A DNA stretch of 64,000 nucleotides, from sequence record ON529852.1; one strand, given 5' to 3'. A program made the position numbers and the translations under genes. A model generated the notes under the pieces. The model was not told the DNA's origin. It saw only the letters and a program-made list of their open reading frames with translations, and did not search any database. Positions 30,562-53,700 of the stretch are shown here, one piece after another. How positions within the stretch are numbered: the first letter of the stretch is position 1; every line of letters starts with the position of its first letter.

Positions 30562-31716
30562 TCAGCCGCCCGGCTCCAGGCGCACGCCGTCGAGCGCCTT
30601 CAACATGTCTTCACGGGTCGCGGTGTAGTCGCTCAAGGCCCAGGTCATCCGCGCCGCCATCAACCCGGCGCCGATCTCCTTGGGCTTGAACCCCTTCGCG
30701 ACGAAATCATCCCCATTGATGGGCAGCGTCGGGACGGACCAGGAAGAGACTTCGGTGAAGACGTCCGGGACCCCGGTCGCCCGCGCCCAGGCCTCGGCAT
30801 AGGCGAGCGAGGCTTTTTCGCACGCCAGGAGGTATTTCAGGTTCTTTAGGGACGGCGGGCTATACTGGCGGTTCTCCAGGAATTTCGCCAGAGCCGTCTC
30901 GGGATTCGACCAGCGCCAGCGTTTGGCGATCGGCGACCAGTTCTTGGCGAGCGCGCTCATCAGCACCACGGGATCGCGGGTGTGGACGTGCGCGATGTCC
31001 ATGCGTTCGGGCAAGACTTCGCCGGAGACCTCCAGATGATCCAGCAGGCCCAGGCGGCGCATTTCCCGCACCATGCGCGGCCCGCTGTCGTGGGCCACCA
31101 CCTTCTTCATCTCGACCCAGATACGTTCACCGGAAATGGCGCGCAGACCGTGACCGAACAGGGCGCAGGCCGCCGCCGCCGCCGGGTCAAGGGGACCCCG
31201 TCCATAACGACCGTGGAAGCGGAAGAAGCGCAGGATGCGCAGGTGGTCTTCCTCAATCCGCTCGGAGGCGTCGCCGACAAAGCGGACCACGCCGGCGTTC
31301 AGATCGTCCGCGCCCCCGTAGGGGTCGATCAGGACGCCCTGGAAGGTCATCGCCATGGCGTTGATCGTCAGATCGCGTCGCGCCAGGTCTTCATGCAGGT
31401 CGCGGGTGAAGGCGACCGTGGCGTGGCGGCCGTCGTGCTCCGATTCCGTGCGCAGGGTGGTGATCTCGTAGGGCTCGTCGCCGATCACGACCGTCAACGT
31501 GCCGAACTCGATCCCCGTCGGATAACAGATGAGGCCCAGACTTTCGTAGATGGCCTGCTGTTCGTCGGGCGTGGCGTCCGTGCACAGGTCGACATCCTTG
31601 TGCGCCTCGCCCCGCAAGGCGTCGCGCACACAGCCGCCGACGAACCACAGACTGAAGCCGCGCTCCTGGTAGGCGCGTTCGACCGCCGCCAGTTCTGGGG
31701 TGACCGGCATACGCAT
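30562..31716 (-). CDS. cca: class II CCA-adding tRNA nucleotidyltransferase
   Basis: VGGCVRD, DVDLCT, EITTLR, DGRH loop, DLARRDLTINAM, EDHLRILRFFRF; no HD domain. Confidence 0.88.
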   Translation of the reverse strand: MRMPVTPELAAVERAYQERGFSLWFVGGCVRDALRGEAHKDVDLCTDATPDEQQAIYESLGLICYPTGIEFGTLTVVIGDEPYEITTLRTESEHDGRHATVAFTRDLHEDLARRDLTINAMAMTFQGVLIDPYGGADDLNAGVVRFVGDASERIEEDHLRILRFFRFHGRYGRGPLDPAAAAACALFGHGLRAISGERIWVEMKKVVAHDSGPRMVREMRRLGLLDHLEVSGEVLPERMDIAHVHTRDPVVLMSALAKNWSPIAKRWRWSNPETALAKFLENRQYSPPSLKNLKYLLACEKASLAYAEAWARATGVPDVFTEVSSWSVPTLPINGDDFVAKGFKPKEIGAGLMAARMTWALSDYTATREDMLKALDGVRLEPGG

Positions 31717-38910: not shown

Positions 38911-39137
38911 CAAACGCCTACCTTCCACACACGGCGCGCCACCACGACGCCGACACCCATGCCGACGAGGGTCAGCACCGCAAGAAACCCGCCACGCAGG
39001 GCGTGTTCCGCCTGGCTCTCGCCATATCCGGCGAGACGCTTGATCCAGTAGGCGGAGCCGCCCATCATCACGATGGAGACGTAAACGCCGACCAGGACCG
39101 ACGCCCACAGGCGCAACGCCTTCACTCCGGCGCTCAC
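38910..39137 (-). CDS. small two-helix membrane protein
   Basis: GTG start overlapping stop at 39134; two hydrophobic helices. Confidence 0.65.
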   Translation of the reverse strand: MSAGVKALRLWASVLVGVYVSIVMMGGSAYWIKRLAGYGESQAEHALRGGFLAVLTLVGMGVGVVVARRVWKVGV

Positions 39138-40144
39138 GTCTGAACCGCGCCTTTCGCGATGCCGGACAGACGGATGGCGGCGTGGTTGCCCAGGATCGAG
39201 CCTTCCACCAACCACTCCACGCGGGTGCGGTAGAGCGGCGGGTGATCGACGGCGTCGCGGTAGCCAGGGGGCGCCGTTTCTTTGGAGATCAGGCCCAGGT
39301 CGGCGACTTGCGGCGGGTTGTTCATCAGCCCGACGACGCCTTCGGGCTTCAGCGCCACCACATAGATCGAGGTGGTGTCGCCGGGCTCGTTGAAGTCGAT
39401 GATCTGTGCATCGACTTCGTTGTAATCGGTGCACAGGATCGTGACGGTCCGCCCCTGCCGGGTCGTATAGGTGGCGATACGCCGGCCGTTCTCATCTTTA
39501 TCCCAGCCGATATAGACGTGATCCGTCGACGGCCTCGCGCCGACCGTCAGCAGGTTCCGCATGCGTTTGCTGGTGACGAGGTGGGTGGCGTTCGTCTGTT
39601 CGATGGCGCGATCCAGGACGGCCAACCGAAGCGGCCCGCCCATATCGAGAACGGCGTCGTCGGCGATCCGATGCTTCAGTCCTGTGGAATAGGCGTAGGC
39701 GGCCGTGCCGTCGCCATTGATCATCCGATCCACCAACGACTTCGCCGCCAGGCGGTGATGCATTCGGCGACGCAACGACAGCAACGAGGCACCGGAGTCC
39801 TCGACCAGGGCGGCGTCCACGTCGCAATCGCCGCACATGATCTTCAGCGTATCTTCGCTGCGGGGTTTGATGGTGGTGAAGCGCTCGCCCTCGCGCTTCA
39901 GGGCGCCCCCCGAGACGGTCAGGAACGGCAGCGCCTGCAAAAGGTCCTCCGCCACCAACGCTTCGAGATATTCGGCCTGGCGCATGTCGCCGCGCTCCGC
40001 TGCGTCTTCCCTCAGGTCTTCGAGATAGGAGACGACGACGGCCTGGCGCTCGCCGGGCTGCGCGGCGGGTGCGGCTTCAGCCACGCCGGCGGCGATCAGG
40101 GAGGCGGCGGAGGCCGTGGCGTACAGGAAGGCGCGGCGGTTCAT
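39134..40144 (-). CDS. major-capsid-protein paralog (HK97-fold, phiCbK-type) with N-terminal Tat signal
   Basis: NRRAFL + h-region + AEA; then LLQALPF, GDCDVD, INGD, LAVLDRAI, SKRMRNLL, IIDFNE, TSIYVV, YRTRVEWLV, AAIRLSGI, recalled as conserved blocks of this capsid family. Confidence 0.75.
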   Translation of the reverse strand: MNRRAFLYATASAASLIAAGVAEAAPAAQPGERQAVVVSYLEDLREDAAERGDMRQAEYLEALVAEDLLQALPFLTVSGGALKREGERFTTIKPRSEDTLKIMCGDCDVDAALVEDSGASLLSLRRRMHHRLAAKSLVDRMINGDGTAAYAYSTGLKHRIADDAVLDMGGPLRLAVLDRAIEQTNATHLVTSKRMRNLLTVGARPSTDHVYIGWDKDENGRRIATYTTRQGRTVTILCTDYNEVDAQIIDFNEPGDTTSIYVVALKPEGVVGLMNNPPQVADLGLISKETAPPGYRDAVDHPPLYRTRVEWLVEGSILGNHAAIRLSGIAKGAVQT

Positions 40145-40155
40145 GGTGAAGCCTT

Positions 40156-40530
40156 TCAGGAATGGATTTCGTCGCGCCCGTCCAGCGCGTCATCGCGCTG
40201 ACACAGGTCGACCAGACGGTGGACCGAGAGGTGGCGGTCGTAGATGGCGCAGCCGTCGAACTTGAATAGTTCCGAAGCCTCATGCATCAGGGCGCGCTGC
40301 ACCGCCGCCCAGAGCGTCTGGACGATCTCGGTGTCGGTCATCCACCGCGACAGCTTCCACTTGCGGCCCTTCCATTCGATGGGCAGGCCGGTGGTGGTGT
40401 CGATGCCGTCGGGGCAGATGATCTGGCACCAGGGCTCGTCGAACGAGCCCGAGACCTTGAACGTGAAGCCGGGATAGCGGCACCGCGCCACCACCGCCTC
40501 CAGTTCGGCGAAGGTTTTAGGATCGGACAT
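40156..40530 (-). CDS. hypothetical phage protein
   Basis: ORF in coupled chain. Confidence 0.7.
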   Translation of the reverse strand: MSDPKTFAELEAVVARCRYPGFTFKVSGSFDEPWCQIICPDGIDTTTGLPIEWKGRKWKLSRWMTDTEIVQTLWAAVQRALMHEASELFKFDGCAIYDRHLSVHRLVDLCQRDDALDGRDEIHS

Positions 40531-41060
40531 CAGGCGGGCGGCCGGGCTTTCGCCCGCGCCTCCAGCGCCGCCATCAAGCGGCTGTTGTCGTAGCGGACCT
40601 GTCCCGGCAGGGCGGCCTTCAGCGCCTTCACATCCTTGATGTGACGGGTGAACATCACCACAGGAGGCACGTCATCCGCCAGGGACTCGCCGGTGTAGTG
40701 ATACATTTCGGCCTCGATCACCAGGACGTCGCCGTCAAAGACCTTGACGCGCGGGCCGGTCAGTCCGGCCTTGTAGCCATTATGGGAATCCCAGGCCTGG
40801 CCCAGTTCCCCTTCGAAACGGGGGTCCTTGAGGTCGACGCGCACGTCGATCGGCCACGTCTCCTGCCCGATGACATAGCCGTCGGCCTGAACCTGGTTGA
40901 TCCAGTCCACAGCGAGCGAGGCGTGCTCATGGCGGAAGGCCTCCTGCGTGAAGGTCACGGCGCGCATCATCGGAGACGTGACAGCAGCCAAGGCGGCGGC
41001 GGGCAGGGCGCTCAGCGCCGCTGCGGCGCCGGCGGATTTGAACAGGGTGCGGCGGTTCAT
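40530..41060 (-). CDS. Tat-signal (twin-arginine) exported protein of unknown function
   Basis: Start MNRRTLFKSAGAAAALSALPAAALA; GAGGAG RBS. Confidence 0.75.
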   Translation of the reverse strand: MNRRTLFKSAGAAAALSALPAAALAAVTSPMMRAVTFTQEAFRHEHASLAVDWINQVQADGYVIGQETWPIDVRVDLKDPRFEGELGQAWDSHNGYKAGLTGPRVKVFDGDVLVIEAEMYHYTGESLADDVPPVVMFTRHIKDVKALKAALPGQVRYDNSRLMAALEARAKARPPA

Positions 41061-41070
41061 CAGGGACTCC

Positions 41071-41319
41071 TCAGTCGAGAGGGATGTCGTGATAGGCGAG
41101 CCAGTCCTGGAGTGCCCCGCGCGAAGGAAAGTCATTGACCTCCAACTCGCCCGAAGCCCCCGACAGGGTGCAGCCCCAGTAGCCTTCATCGTCATCCTGT
41201 TCGAGGAACTGCGCCGACACGTCGTCGTCTTCAGCCGCCTCCCCGAAGCGCTCGTACCAGATGAGACCGAGGTCGTCGTCGGGTTGCAGGACGGGGGTGT
41301 TGAAGAAGTCCAGACGCAA
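41071..41319 (-). CDS. small acidic hypothetical protein
   Basis: TTG start with GAGGA RBS; D/E-rich. Confidence 0.7.
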   Translation of the reverse strand: MRLDFFNTPVLQPDDDLGLIWYERFGEAAEDDDVSAQFLEQDDDEGYWGCTLSGASGELEVNDFPSRGALQDWLAYHDIPLD

Positions 41320-41339
41320 GGCGCATCCTCAGAGAAAGT

Positions 41340-41612
41340 AGAGTGGGAGCGAGGGCGGACGACGCATGAGCACAGGGCAAAAAGCACAAGGCAAAAAGCA
41401 ACCCAGCAAACGTGTCACAAACCCCGAGCAATAGAGCAGCGCCATTGTTTCAGGCGGCCCGAAGGCACGTTGTTTGATCGGGGCAGCACGACACGATCCC
41501 ATAAAAGGGTGGTGCTATGTTTCGATCATCAAGGCCCGAAGGCCTCGGATGAGTAGGCGCCGCCCGTATCCTCGCTCCCACCCCTCGGTTCAGGCAGGCC
41601 CGTAGGCCCGCC
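41340..41612 (-). ncRNA. putative structured non-coding RNA (~270 nt)
   Basis: 12-bp perfect plus 10-bp G-U-containing closing helix (41557-41581 with 41343-41365); C(UUCG)G and C(UACG)G hairpins; 14-nt U-rich tandem repeat; G-U pairs work only on the minus strand. Confidence 0.7.
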
Positions 41613-41630
41613 GTCCCCAAGTGGGTGAAA

Positions 41631-42227
41631 TCAGTTCAGCTTGAAGCGCTCGATCAACGCCACCACGGTCTCGGGGAGGGTGATGCGATGACCGGTGTTC
41701 AGGCCCAGAAGTTCGTCGGTGATCTCCGCCTTCTCGCGGCGAATGTCGCGCAGGGCGTCCTCCAGGCCGTCGTAGGCCGAACGAGGGACCCGAACCGAGA
41801 AGGTTTCGGCGGCGGTGACGCGAACGCCGGCGGTCTTGGCGGCCTCGTGTTGCGCCAGGAGGGCTTCGAAACGGCGCGGGGCCAGGGCGACGTCATCGCT
41901 CGCCGTGGCGGCGGGCGCATGCATGAAGACCTGCGACAGCAGCTTCTCCTTGCGGTCCAGCAGCGCCTTGCGGGTCAGGACGTCGTTGATGCCCGAGGTG
42001 TGGAAGGCCTTGCCCATCAGGGCGCGCACGGCGTAGGCGGCCTCGGTCAGCGCCAGGGCGTCCTCCAGGGTGGTGCGCATCGCCTGGCCGGCGGCGTCCA
42101 CCTTGCCGGCGAAATCGGGGGTCGTGTCATAGATGGAGAACGCCACGGCGTGCTCGGCGGTCTGCTTCAGGGCTTCGTCTTGAAGCGATTTGGCGAGCGC
42201 ATTGGCTTTGCGCAGATTGACTTGCAT
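41631..42227 (-). CDS. all-helical hypothetical protein upstream of the putative ncRNA
   Basis: MQVNLRKANAL...SGINDVL...LRDIRREKAEITDELLGLN; amphipathic helices, loosely reminiscent of DIP1984-like proteins (unverified). Confidence 0.75.
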   Translation of the reverse strand: MQVNLRKANALAKSLQDEALKQTAEHAVAFSIYDTTPDFAGKVDAAGQAMRTTLEDALALTEAAYAVRALMGKAFHTSGINDVLTRKALLDRKEKLLSQVFMHAPAATASDDVALAPRRFEALLAQHEAAKTAGVRVTAAETFSVRVPRSAYDGLEDALRDIRREKAEITDELLGLNTGHRITLPETVVALIERFKLN

Positions 42228-42255
42228 CGGGTCCTCCGTAAATCGTTTGCCGTGT

Positions 42256-42282
42256 TTACTGGCACTTGGCGCCGTCTGTCAA
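42256..42282 (-). promoter_or_regulatory. sigma70-like promoter (class II, 18-nt spacer)
   Basis: TTGACA-18nt-TAAACA upstream of GGAGGACCCG-ATG. Confidence 0.45.
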
Positions 42283-42289
42283 CTCTTAA

Positions 42290-42625
42290 TCACATGGGCT
42301 TCAACTTGATCAGCAGCGGCACGCCGTTGATGTTGAACCGCACGACCTCCACGCGGCCCGCGCGCACCAGCTTCTGGATCGTCGCGGCGGAGAAGCTTTT
42401 CTCCCTGAAGGCCCCGTCGGCGTCACGGGGCTGGCCCATCACGTTGTAGAGCCCGAGGCTGTCGCGCTCCATGGCGTGGGAATCATGGACCGCCATCATC
42501 ATCAGGGCGATCTCGGCCGCCGGCGCCACAGAGCCCTTGCGCAGGCCGCCCAGGTAACGGACGACCCGTTCCCGCTGCTGCGCCTGCAACTGCTGGCGAA
42601 AGGCGATCTGGGACGCGGTGGGCAT
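42290..42625 (-). CDS. hypothetical protein
   Basis: ORF in coupled chain. Confidence 0.65.
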   Translation of the reverse strand: MPTASQIAFRQQLQAQQRERVVRYLGGLRKGSVAPAAEIALMMMAVHDSHAMERDSLGLYNVMGQPRDADGAFREKSFSAATIQKLVRAGRVEVVRFNINGVPLLIKLKPM

Positions 42626-42882
42626 CAGAAGGCCGCCTGCATGGCGGCGACATCCAGCACGATCAGGACCCCGGTGTGAACCCGCAGTCGATCGGAGTTG
42701 ATGCCTGACAGGAAGACCGGCGCCTGGTCGGTTCCAGGCCGGATGACGCAGTAGGGCTGCTGCCTCAGGCGCCCGGCGTCAGAGGCGTGCTCGACGATGG
42801 TCCAGGCGACCGCATCGGCGTCCCCGGCGTCGTGCCCCAACCGCGTCAGCCAGTTGACGCAGTGGGTGTGGAAGTGGCGCAT
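42625..42882 (-). CDS. hypothetical protein
   Basis: Start moved to MRHFHTH. Confidence 0.6.
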   Translation of the reverse strand: MRHFHTHCVNWLTRLGHDAGDADAVAWTIVEHASDAGRLRQQPYCVIRPGTDQAPVFLSGINSDRLRVHTGVLIVLDVAAMQAAF

Positions 42883-51847: not shown

Positions 51848-52396
51848 CTAGGCGGCGTATCGGTCGAGCATCCAGTGCAGGTCCAGCGGCTCGAAGGCGT
51901 CGAACTCCTCGATCAGGTCGGCTGTCACGGGAAAGGCGATCACTTCAGCCGAGGCGGACGGGACGACGCTGCGGCGACTATCCGCCACGGCGCCCTTGCC
52001 GCGTCCGATGCTCTGGCGAGGCTTCACGCCGCGTTTCGGCTTGTAGGTCGCCTTGCGGCGCAGGGCGTTGCTCTGCTTGGACGTCTCGGCGTCGTCGGCC
52101 CGCTTCAGCCCCAGGCGGTCGAGCCGGCCCAGGACGGCGCTGCGGCTGCGATTGCCCATGAGCAGGCTGATCTCCTGGGCGGTCTTGCCCTCCCGCCAGA
52201 GCCGGACCAGATCGTCAACCTCGGCCTGGGGCCAGGCGTGGGTCGGCTTTTTCGGCTGCGCGGCCCTGCGGGCCTGGACCTTTGCGATCCGGCGCAGTTC
52301 CGCCCGCTCCTGCGGATCAGCGGGAACCTCCATGTCGTCCCAGTCACCGGCGCCGCGCCAGTCTCGGCTCGGATCGCCTTCCAGAAGCGTCGTCAC
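51848..52396 (-). CDS. gcrA: GcrA-like cell-cycle regulator, N-terminal domain only
   Basis: WPQAEVDDLVRLWREGKTAQEISLLMGNRSRSAVLGRLDRLGL matches the GcrA N-terminal domain; GTG start overlaps serS stop; no C-terminal CxWP-type domain. Confidence 0.8.
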   Translation of the reverse strand: MTTLLEGDPSRDWRGAGDWDDMEVPADPQERAELRRIAKVQARRAAQPKKPTHAWPQAEVDDLVRLWREGKTAQEISLLMGNRSRSAVLGRLDRLGLKRADDAETSKQSNALRRKATYKPKRGVKPRQSIGRGKGAVADSRRSVVPSASAEVIAFPVTADLIEEFDAFEPLDLHWMLDRYAA

Positions 52397-53700
52397 CCCG
52401 CCAACCCGACTTCCGGCAGGCGCGGGCGCAGGTAGGGGACCAGAATGGCCGGCATGTCGACGCCGCCGTCGTCGGTCTGGTGGTTCTCGAACAGCGCCGC
52501 CAGGGTGCGGCCGACCGCCAGGCCGGAGCCGTTCAGGCTGTGCAGGTAGCCCAGCTTGCCATCCGCCTGACGATAGCGACCCTTCATCCGCCGGGTCTGA
52601 AAGTCGCCGCACCAGGAGATCGAAGCGATCTCGACATAGCGTTGCTGGCTGGGCATCCAGACTTCCAGGTCGATGGTCTTGCGGGCGGCGAAGCCCATGT
52701 CGCCGGCCGCCAGCAGCACCTTGCGATAGGGCAGTTCTAGGTATTGCAGGACCGCCTCGGCGCAGGCGACCTTGCGATCGAACTCGGCCTCGGCCTGTTC
52801 GGGCTCGACCAGGGAGACCAATTCCACCTTCATGAACTGATGTTGGCGGATCAGGCCGGTGGTGTCGCGGCCGGCGGCGCCGGCTTCGGCGCGGAAACAG
52901 GGCGTCAGGGCGGTGAACCGCAGCGGCAGGGCCTCGCGCTCGGTGGTCTGTTCGCGCGCCAGGTTGGTCAGCGGCACCTCGCCGGTGGGGATCAGCAGGT
53001 TGCCGTCCGTCAACTGGAAAAGGTCGTCCTTGAACTTCGGCCACTGCCCGGTGGCGTACATGACGTTGGGCTTGACGATGAACGGGACCGACTTTTCGAC
53101 GTAGCCGTGCCGGTGCACATGCAGGTCGAGCATGAACTGGCCCAGGGCGCGCTCGACGCTGGCGAAGGCGCCTGACAGGACGGCGTAGCGCGATCCGCTC
53201 AGCCAACCGGCGACGGCGCTGTCGTAGCTGTTCCCGGCCAGGGTGACATGGTCCTTGGGCTCGACATAGGCGCGGCGCTTGCCCCATTCGCTGATGACGA
53301 TGTTGTTCGCTTCGCCGCCCTCGGGGATGTCCTCGGCAGGCAGGTTCGGCAATAGGTCGACCAGGCCTTCGCGGGTCTTGTAAAGGGAGTCTTCCTGCTT
53401 CGCCAACCGCTCCAGGCGCGGTTTGATTTCGGCCATGCGGGCGCGCAGGGTCTCTTCCTCGGACGGCGGCGCATCGCCTTCCCGCGCCGCCACGGGCCGA
53501 ACGTCCTGGCGGAGTTCACCGATCCGGGTCGAGATGGCGTTGCGCTCGGTCTGAAGCGCCTGGAGTTCAGTGCGGGTCGCCTGGAGGTCGCGATGCGCCG
53601 CGCGGGCGTCGTCGACGATGGTCTTCACCGCTCCGCCGCGTTTGGCGATCGCCGCGACGACGGCGTCGGGTTCATTGTCGATCAGGTGAAAATCAAGCAT
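52393..53700 (-). CDS. serS: seryl-tRNA synthetase
   Basis: N-terminal coiled coil, LPNLP...PEG, LIPTGEVPL, CFRAEAG...GLIRQHQFMKVEL, IDLEVWMP, EIASIS, HSLNGSGLAVGRTLAALFENHQ. Confidence 0.97.
   Translation of the reverse strand: MLDFHLIDNEPDAVVAAIAKRGGAVKTIVDDARAAHRDLQATRTELQALQTERNAISTRIGELRQDVRPVAAREGDAPPSEEETLRARMAEIKPRLERLAKQEDSLYKTREGLVDLLPNLPAEDIPEGGEANNIVISEWGKRRAYVEPKDHVTLAGNSYDSAVAGWLSGSRYAVLSGAFASVERALGQFMLDLHVHRHGYVEKSVPFIVKPNVMYATGQWPKFKDDLFQLTDGNLLIPTGEVPLTNLAREQTTEREALPLRFTALTPCFRAEAGAAGRDTTGLIRQHQFMKVELVSLVEPEQAEAEFDRKVACAEAVLQYLELPYRKVLLAAGDMGFAARKTIDLEVWMPSQQRYVEIASISWCGDFQTRRMKGRYRQADGKLGYLHSLNGSGLAVGRTLAALFENHQTDDGGVDMPAILVPYLRPRLPEVGLAG

Follow-up and report, generated by a model that had tools for sequence, protein, structure and literature searches.

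GOLLD and ROOL, two classes of ornate RNA encoded by phages, form RNA-only assemblies (cages), and ROOL has no known protein partner (PMC12286853). Both are a standing puzzle: their structures have been solved, and their functions and partners are unknown. Ro60-Y RNA systems also occur in phages, CcrColossus among them (PMC12135203). The locus described here lies in a stretch of 64,000 nucleotides (nt), referred to as the window, which is 100% identical to Brevundimonas phage vB_BpoS-Kabachok (ON529852.1), a jumbo phage of 356 kilobases (kb) from the Dolichocephalovirinae; position 40500 of the window is position 102500 of the record. The minus strand carries every gene around the locus. Between KABACHOK_02060, the gene of a 198-residue helical protein, and KABACHOK_02050, the gene of an 82-residue acidic protein, a gap of 311 nt (41320-41630) holds a structured RNA, which we call the UG-heptad RNA. 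The original prediction had proposed that this RNA and the helical protein form a ribonucleoprotein system. The family to which the locus leads is one of uncatalogued phage structured RNAs, about 195-300 nt long, in a fixed genetic pair with a roughly 190-residue, all-helical protein.

Conserved structure of the RNA

The gap is non-coding, since close relatives show single-base indels inside it; open reading frames (ORFs) of 56-57 residues within the gap are broken in this way in Domovoi and Marchewka. The helices of the Kabachok RNA span 41341-41621 on the minus strand, which folds at -141 kcal/mol, compared with -114 +/- 5.7 kcal/mol for dinucleotide shuffles (z-score -4.7; none of 100 shuffles equals it), while the opposite (plus) strand of the gap has a z-score of -2.6. 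Every helix that the original prediction had named is found on the minus strand when sequence and fold are checked. One of these, a GGCGGGCC-UACG-GGCCUGCC hairpin at 41612-41593, exists but is not separate, being the variable tip of a conserved stem, P0. The outer stem of P0 is invariant in 7/7 sequences, its tip covaries or has insertions, and a conserved ACCGAGGGG comes after it at 41589-41581. The same hairpin was considered as an intrinsic terminator and ruled out, since it is without a U-tract and a terminator scan was empty. Neither promoter-like nor terminator-like sites are predicted in a scan of 40900-42700.

Four sister phages of Kabachok share the gap at 90-94% identity. Homologues of the 198-residue protein, at about 31% identity, are found by tblastn in Gurke, Kikimora, CcrColossus and CcrPW, and each is followed by an unannotated gap of 284-292 nt and then by a homologue of the 82-residue protein. 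Across seven Dolichocephalovirinae phages the gap is 284-314 nt long. The gaps of the relatives fold with z-scores of -5.0 to -5.7, and a further relative gives -4.8. The closing helix varies in sequence yet stays complementary (GUGGGAGCGAGG/CCUCGCUCCCAC, GCGGGGACGGAAG/CUUCCGUCCCCGC, GGUGGAAGCGG/CCGCUUCCAC). The regions downstream of these distant protein homologues, which the original prediction had proposed as a check, do therefore hold a conserved structure with compensatory changes. The smaller relatives phiCbK, CcrRogue, CcrBL10 and Bajun have neither the protein nor the gap at the syntenic site. A minimal version of the RNA, about 195 nt long, comes after the protein homologue of the cultured Vibrio jumbo phage MG592671, with a textbook intrinsic terminator 3' of it.

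A profile search with the protein gave 123 IMG/VR loci, of which 80 were fetched and analysed; nearly all have 31-46% GC and lie within dense tRNA arrays. The RNA occurs in them in two forms. Variant A (16-17 loci) is 260-280 nt long and runs from the protein stop codon to a few nucleotides before the next tRNA. Variant A and the Kabachok RNA have, in the same order, the leader AGUUUYG...GAGG, a P1 of 8-16 base pairs (bp) with GGAUA after it, a long P2 that ends in CGC/GCG, the helix P4 (GNCCA/UGGNC), a P6 preceded on its 3' side by CUGCUUGUUGC, and a tract of invariant UG dinucleotides. Variant A' is about 270 nt long and has its own sigma-70-like promoter (TTGACA-17-TATAAT). It has a CUUGAAAA-loop hairpin in common with variant A, and also the UUGCUG-P6 arrangement and the UG heptads of that variant; as in Kabachok, where P0 comes with ACCGAGG, its 5' hairpin is followed by ACCGG. 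The covariance model of A' (R2) also matches variant A RNAs at the correct positions (E = 4e-4 to 0.1), so that A and A' are tied together. The CUGCU..UUGC motif is kept in all clades.

The pairing is borne out by covariation in two alignments. In an unmodified MAFFT alignment of 12 variant A RNAs, 87.3% of the cells in a five-helix structure pair, compared with 70.6 +/- 1.3% in shuffles and 35-53% in slid controls. In this alignment 24 of 33 pairs have compensatory double changes, and the covariation score is 0.52 against 0.23, with none of 500 shuffles as high. An alignment of 21 sequences from both GC classes was curated by hand, the 3' strands being anchored, their partners found by complementarity and the rest padded with N. 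Because this helix alignment is 100% paired by construction and thus circular in that respect, only its covariation measures count: 42 of its 65 pairs have compensatory changes, in 187 cells compared with 54 +/- 6 in shuffles, and such changes are found in 13 of 17 columns of P1 and 19 of 32 columns of P2. The unbiased MAFFT alignment agrees with it. The common G-U pairs (97 of 889 helix pairs), the asymmetry of the fold and the fixed orientation to tRNAs, promoters and terminator assign the structure to the transcript rather than to the DNA.

These data bear directly on the idea of a DNA-level element, such as an origin, a packaging site or an inverted-repeat mobile element, or of a chance GC-rich fold. 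The arms of the closing helix do resemble terminal inverted repeats of 22 bp, and HNH endonuclease genes lie close by. However, the compensatory changes include the many G-U pairs just mentioned, each of which would read as an A-C mismatch on the opposite strand, the fold is strand-asymmetric, its orientation always matches that of the tRNAs and the protein, and in relatives a promoter stands in front of it or a terminator behind it. The element is also present in one copy per genome, with syntenic matches only, on which grounds an inverted-repeat mobile element was rejected. A DNA-level element or a chance fold is thus hardly credible. The RNA structure is real, conserved and strand-specific, as its compensatory changes and its strand-asymmetric fold demonstrate.

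The most distinctive part of the RNA is the tract that links its inner domain to the 3' strand of P2. What had been read as a 14-nt tandem repeat (41369-41396) is indeed repetitive, but the unit is different, the true periodicity being one of 7 nt set by invariant UG dinucleotides. In Kabachok these lie at 41405/04, 41400/399, 41393/92, 41386/85, 41379/78 and 41372/71. Each of the six is invariant in 24/24 sequences of an alignment that ranges from 34 to 66% GC (with one additional base in two sequences). UG is followed by a pyrimidine and usually preceded by U, the spacers are free, and the tract is single-stranded in the consensus. The full six-UG pattern occurs once in the window, both strands considered, and not at all in 100 shuffles. 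A looser four-UG pattern gives 72 arrays in the 62 kb beside protein genes and 4 in the other about 335 kb, on the same strand. Anticodon-loop mimicry, display of Cys/Ala codons, RNase E sites and boxA were considered for the heptads, and a T-box-like NCCA/UGGN pairing for P4; all were rejected, since only UG is invariant and this pattern of conservation is unlike any of them.

Genetic pairing with a helical protein

The RNA stands beside the protein gene, on the same strand and within about 360 nt, in 79 of the 80 viral contigs, and the genetic pairing of the two is therefore a matter of observation. The 79 loci comprise 63 covariance-model matches and 16 variant A loci; in one of the latter (L057) the contig ends 86 nt past the stop codon and the leader is visible. 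The contig of the 80th locus (L079) ends 39 nt before the gene, too early to judge. The matches of R2 (63/80 loci) all have E <= 5e-7 and are always on the strand of the protein. A search of IMG/VR with a DNA pattern of the RNA alone gave 14 matches, of which 13 lie directly after a protein homologue. As a side observation, one 6.5-kb locus (L083) has two A' copies (178-449 and 2707-2978), the only duplication seen, and its first copy has no detected protein homologue beside it.

The Kabachok RNA lies on the same strand as its neighbour and starts at the stop codon of a helical-protein homologue with the LRKANA sequence. It contains, in order, P1, GGAUA, P2, CUGCU..UUGC before P6, and UGs spaced 5-7-7-7-7 that lead into GCG. 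The original prediction had the protein followed by the RNA, and this order holds in Kabachok and in 18 loci, but in the majority (61 loci) the RNA is upstream and has its own promoter. All of the upstream RNAs belong to variant A', of which two further examples (L046 and L059) are downstream. In the protein tree, variant A is found in deep-branching lineages that include the Kabachok clade, while one derived clade (97/97 support) has A' upstream.

This change of side is important for the question whether the RNA is a cis-acting element of an untranslated region, that is, an operator, stabiliser or processing signal for the adjacent protein gene or for the Kabachok 82-residue gene. The RNA is always within the same transcription unit, 20-30 nt separate the upstream variant from the start codon, and in Kabachok about 10 nt lie between the 3' strand of P1 and the GAGGA of the following gene; moreover, an mRNA inside a heavily processed tRNA array might need protected ends. 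Yet the same RNA is found 5' of the gene in some loci and 3' of it in others, a distribution that speaks against a purely positional role of this kind, and where a gene for RNA polymerase omega stands between them the RNA no longer adjoins the start codon of the protein. Other ORFs in the arrays are without such an element, the 82-residue gene is missing outside the Dolichocephalovirinae, and a stabiliser could be far simpler than an element of 200-300 nt whose helices, about seven in number, are conserved and whose repeats are invariant. A cis-acting role is thus distinctly unlikely. A riboswitch or leader of the ribosomal-protein type was rejected on the same distribution (3' of the gene in 18 loci, 5' in 61, sometimes with omega between). 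A group I intron was rejected too, because the flanking ORFs are two independent conserved genes with their own starts and stops in all relatives, because the RNA is flanked by a promoter or tRNA in most of them, and because there is no match to an intron in Rfam.

Since the same protein gene adjoins the RNA in every informative relative, the RNA and the protein probably work together. The N terminus of the protein, M-x-x-x-LRKANA, is conserved throughout the family, which comprises at least 1,667 clusters of a large protein database; none of these carries a Pfam domain or an informative name. A profile search of 185,579 species-representative cellular genomes gave no cellular homologue. The Kabachok protein has no Pfam family and falls into PHROG 25230 (function unknown). 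Its AlphaFold2 model, made with a 32-sequence alignment, has a predicted local distance difference test score of 91.7 and is an elongated bundle of five long helices flanked by short N-terminal and C-terminal strands. It had been described as loosely DIP1984-like, which the searches do not support: there is no Pfam match, none of the 25 most frequent Pfam matches listed (34 members) is of the DIP1984 type, and the PDB yields E-values of at least 0.98 by sequence and 0.2 at best by fold. Against BFVD, Foldseek finds only uncharacterised phage proteins (from CcrColossus, Erwinia pEa_SNUABM_47 and Vibrio Vp_R1) and weaker matches in giant viruses, namely Catovirus CTV1 (E = 3.6e-5) and Yasminevirus (E = 1.5e-4). 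Both are giant eukaryotic viruses with many tRNA and translation genes. On the evidence of the modelled fold, these matches could reflect a deep link or merely a common helical bundle.

We infer physical binding, and a joint function, for the RNA-protein pair, and put the chance that they act together as a trans-acting ribonucleoprotein at about even. Such an RNA would be co-transcribed with the protein gene and released by ordinary processing, or in one Vibrio phage by a terminator instead; RNase P would define its 3' side, since the RNA and the next tRNA of the relatives are a few nucleotides apart. It would then work in trans, as a ribonucleoprotein complex whose helical protein may be bound in several copies that read the UG heptads, one protomer per repeat. 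The closing rod (P1-P2) and the inner domain hold the UG tract between them.

Several points weigh against this view. The low-GC model (R1) finds the Kabachok RNA at 41377-41541 on the minus strand and in the correct register with E = 1.3, and R2 has no match at the Kabachok RNA; the difference in GC, 40% compared with 65%, probably masks the signal of the covariance models. Since neither score is significant, the membership of Kabachok rests on synteny, size, helix order, motifs and UG spacing. The protein has no recognisable RNA-binding domain in Pfam, its best Foldseek match in the PDB is to F-BAR-like helical bundles, which gives no fold match, and it is not basic, the median isoelectric point (pI) being 6.4 and that of the Kabachok protein 6.5; low-GC proteins that accompany variant A are on the more basic side, most of them with a pI of 7.9-9.1. 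The tight linkage could also reflect co-regulation of two partners that make no contact.

These points lead to a further possibility, that of an RNA-only machine or scaffold in which the RNA acts alone or as a homo-oligomer and the protein is co-expressed without contact. The near-neutral protein without an RNA-binding domain would fit it, and so would the neighbouring classes, since GOLLD lies 1-2.5 kb away in 9/40 loci and both GOLLD and ROOL are described as RNA-only cages (PMC12286853). However, the same-strand adjacency in 79 of 80 loci survives the switch of side, a constancy that is difficult to account for unless the two are directly tied in function, and a strictly spaced, invariant, single-stranded UG array resembles a ligand-binding surface and not a self-assembly interface. 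We consider an RNA-only machine unlikely, though it is the likeliest of these alternatives to a trans-acting ribonucleoprotein. Overall, the proposal of a ribonucleoprotein system stands in so far as a conserved RNA absent from Rfam is tied to the protein; the likeness to DIP1984 is not supported, and the order of protein and then RNA is one arrangement of two.

Genomic company of the pair

The original prediction did not take into account the phage tRNA arrays, the GOLLD RNA and the RNA polymerase omega gene that are seen in relatives. GOLLD (RF02032) was found on the same strand as the protein gene, and at most 3 kb from it, in nine of the 40 loci scanned (Table 1), and its model never overlaps the UG-heptad RNA in the relatives' loci and has no match in the window. 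Two of these loci, L016 and L028, have the gene order GOLLD, tRNA-Met, protein, RNA, tRNA. In about 16 of the 80 loci, the A' RNA is about 230 nt further upstream, a distance that accommodates one small gene. Of the ORFs in that position, 13 were read and are homologues of RNA polymerase omega (Rpb6/RpoZ), and the nine of them scanned with Pfam are all above the cutoff. The omega stop codon overlaps the ATG of the protein in most of the 13, which suggests translational coupling. In a separate observation, an omega-like ORF in L034 (3654-3924) was recognised by eye after a tRNA-Met. HNH endonucleases, 2OG-Fe(II) oxygenases and an RNase H-like protein are also encoded nearby.

In Kabachok the pair sits among protein genes and outside any tRNA array, and ARAGORN finds no tRNA or tmRNA gene in the window. 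However, a CCA-adding-type nucleotidyltransferase gene (poly(A)-polymerase/CCA-adding type) and a seryl-tRNA synthetase gene are within about 12 kb of the pair, so that this region is translation-related despite the lack of a tRNA gene. Taken together, the tRNA arrays, GOLLD, the coupled omega gene of about a fifth of the loci and these two Kabachok enzymes point to a role in expressing or protecting the phage tRNA and translation programme.

The omega gene also suggests a concrete direction, in which the RNA, the protein and, if present, the phage omega subunit would form a ribonucleoprotein that rides on or remodels host RNA polymerase. If true, this would let long, untranslated and highly structured arrays of tRNA and non-coding RNA escape shut-off mediated by Rho or ppGpp. 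The complex would then represent a novel type of processive transcription factor, one based on RNA and assembled along the UG heptads. We regard this as a long shot.

Table 1. Positions of the UG-heptad RNA, its parts and associated features, in window coordinates or, where a locus is named, in those of the IMG/VR locus
Feature	Position	Strand	Remarks
Whole structured RNA, about 280 nt	41338..41630	-	stop codon to CACUCUAC tail; 5'/3' ends inferred
P0	41584..41621	-	stem CUUGG/CCGAG (41621-41617 with 41588-41584), invariant U-G pair, variable hairpin cap 41612-41593
P1 closing helix, 5' strand	41570..41583	-	pairs with 41341-41354, 14 bp
P1 closing helix, 3' strand	41341..41354	-	pairs with 41570-41583
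GGAUA motif, inner end of P1	41567..41571	-	from alignments; common to all three RNA variants
P2, 5' strand CGGGCGGCGC	41557..41566	-	10 bp with 41356-41365, two G-U pairs
P2, 3' strand GCGUCGUCCG	41356..41365	-	begins with conserved GCG directly after last heptad
P3 hairpin (UCAUC-CGAGGCC-UUCG-GGCCUUG-GAUGA)	41526..41552	-	high-GC clade only
P5	41411..41495	-	CGUGUCG 41495-41489 with UGACACG 41417-41411; encloses P6, two hairpins and CUGCUCUAUUGC
P6 (CCCCGA/UCGGGG pairing)	41484-41478 with 41427-41421	-	7/10 columns with compensatory changes
GCC-UUCG-GGC hairpin	about 41466-41457	-	inside P5
CGCC/GGCG hairpin	41456-41440	-	inside P5
Conserved CUGCUCUAUUGC	41439-41428	-	inside P5
UG-heptad tract	41371..41405	-	six invariant UG, spacing 5-7-7-7-7 nt
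KABACHOK_02060, 198-residue helical protein gene	41631..42227	-	ORF and annotation, family alignments
KABACHOK_02050, 82-residue acidic protein gene (pI about 4)	41071..41319	-	ORF, conservation
GAGGA ribosome-binding site of 82-residue gene	41330-41326	-	directly 3' of RNA
CCA-adding-type nucleotidyltransferase gene	30562-31716	-	
Seryl-tRNA synthetase gene	52393-53700	-	
GOLLD RNA	L016:562-1022, L028:2332-2795, L050:1543-2010, L059:5199-5665, L082:570-1027, L075:1496-1961, L086:1155-1619, L023:23-401, L052:1-355	same as protein gene	
Omega gene between RNA and protein	L033:2774-3004, L056:2774-3004, L061:2789-3004, L013:2757-3011		about 12 more loci
Type B RNA	L033:3574-3901, L039:1378-1698, L050:3577-4017		about 32 other IMG/VR loci

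The conservation of the 82-residue gene is confined to the Dolichocephalovirinae, and it is therefore probably outside the core pair. On its 3' side are the genes of a protein with a twin-arginine (Tat) signal (40530-41054, minus strand) and of a PHROG 1540 protein (40156-40530, minus strand). The latter is kept in all phiCbK-like phages and many other phages, and the annotation of its match in two phage records includes a "ribosome modulation factor-like domain" protein. Further along, KABACHOK_02020 (39134-40144, minus strand) is annotated as a major capsid protein (PHROG 212, E = 5e-24), and its product bears a twin-arginine-like signal peptide (MNRRAFLYATASAASLIAAGVAEAAP). Domovoi, Marchewka, Gurke and Kikimora lack this additional gene at the equivalent position. 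It is an odd gene with an HK97 fold, distant from a structural module and possibly encapsulin-like. An ORF with a GcrA-like domain (51848-53287, minus strand) overlaps the seryl-tRNA synthetase gene in another frame.

Two other elements were noticed in the IMG/VR loci. Type B RNA (about 210-440 nt) is a second, unrelated conserved structure, which occupies the interval from the protein stop codon to a tRNA-Met. The core of this RNA, CAGUCUAGGGC-hairpin-GCUAGACAC, is constant at +164 to +175. Rfam gives no match for type B, whose presence or absence switches between near-identical proteins, as if it were mobile. In L082 (3658-3917), the stretch from the tRNA-Met after the protein to the following tRNA-Gly holds another element, about 260 nt long and closed by a long helix (UUGAUAGUAGUAUGA...UCAUUAUUACUAUCAA), for which Rfam gives nothing at the gathering threshold.

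Comparison with known RNAs and systems

None of the 4,227 models of Rfam 15 has a match in the whole window at its gathering threshold. At permissive thresholds, the best matches in 41000-42000 (E = 0.16-3.1) are to unrelated families at other positions, and the relatives' RNAs match only through their flanking tRNAs. The statement of the original prediction that no tRNA or tmRNA is recognisable in the gap agrees with Rfam 15 and ARAGORN, neither of which gives a family. No description was found in Rfam 15 or in a full-text literature search, and the RNA could be among the 10,006 unnamed candidates of PMC10690425. The family is absent from Rfam and uncatalogued.

The UG-heptad RNA is a third class from the niche of GOLLD and ROOL, and one with an obligate-looking protein partner. 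It offers a candidate recognition element, an invariant UG every 7 nt, and tractable cultured hosts are available for CcrColossus and CcrPW (Caulobacter CB15), for the Brevundimonas pondensis phages and for the Vibrio jumbo phage. With an apparent partner, a candidate recognition element and such hosts at hand, the role of ornate RNAs in phage tRNA arrays becomes approachable with standard genetic and biochemical methods. Naming the pair would also annotate a common virome gene, since all of its many clusters are unannotated.

Among described systems, antitermination RNAs (HK022 put, lambda N-nut and rrn boxA-Nus) are similar in being early elements of long, poorly translated, structured operons, and the omega gene between RNA and protein in part of the loci adds to this likeness. 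However, the UG-heptad element has no sequence match to put, nut or boxA, is much larger, and is often in the middle of an array or, in Kabachok, among protein genes.

TRAP recognises (G/U)AG words at fixed spacing on single-stranded RNA, each word being read by one subunit of the homo-oligomer. It is a beta-sheet ring of 11 subunits that acts on a 5' leader in attenuation. The short invariant words (UG here) at fixed spacing make the TRAP-trp leader a working analogy for the UG heptads, but there is no homology: the protein here is helical, and the words, five or six in number and 7 nt apart, are part of a large folded RNA.

Ro60-Y RNA and YrlA resemble the UG-heptad RNA in that the 5' and 3' ends form a stem-bulge-stem rod, the inner module is complex and the gene is beside that of the protein partner. 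The partner here is a helical bundle of 190 residues instead of a TROVE/HEAT ring of roughly 500 residues, and Y RNAs are without a heptad tract. Rfam gives no match to Y RNA or YrlA. A Ro60-Y RNA system was rejected at this locus, there being no TROVE match in the adjacent genes or in seven scanned window ORFs (384-708 residues), a search that did not cover the 356-kb genome in full.

The closest likeness in setting is to GOLLD and ROOL, which are also ornate structured RNAs encoded by phages, of unknown function, in or beside tRNA arrays. Compared with them, the UG-heptad RNA shows no match in sequence or structure, is two to three times smaller, has a single-stranded UG tract and is accompanied by a dedicated neighbouring protein.

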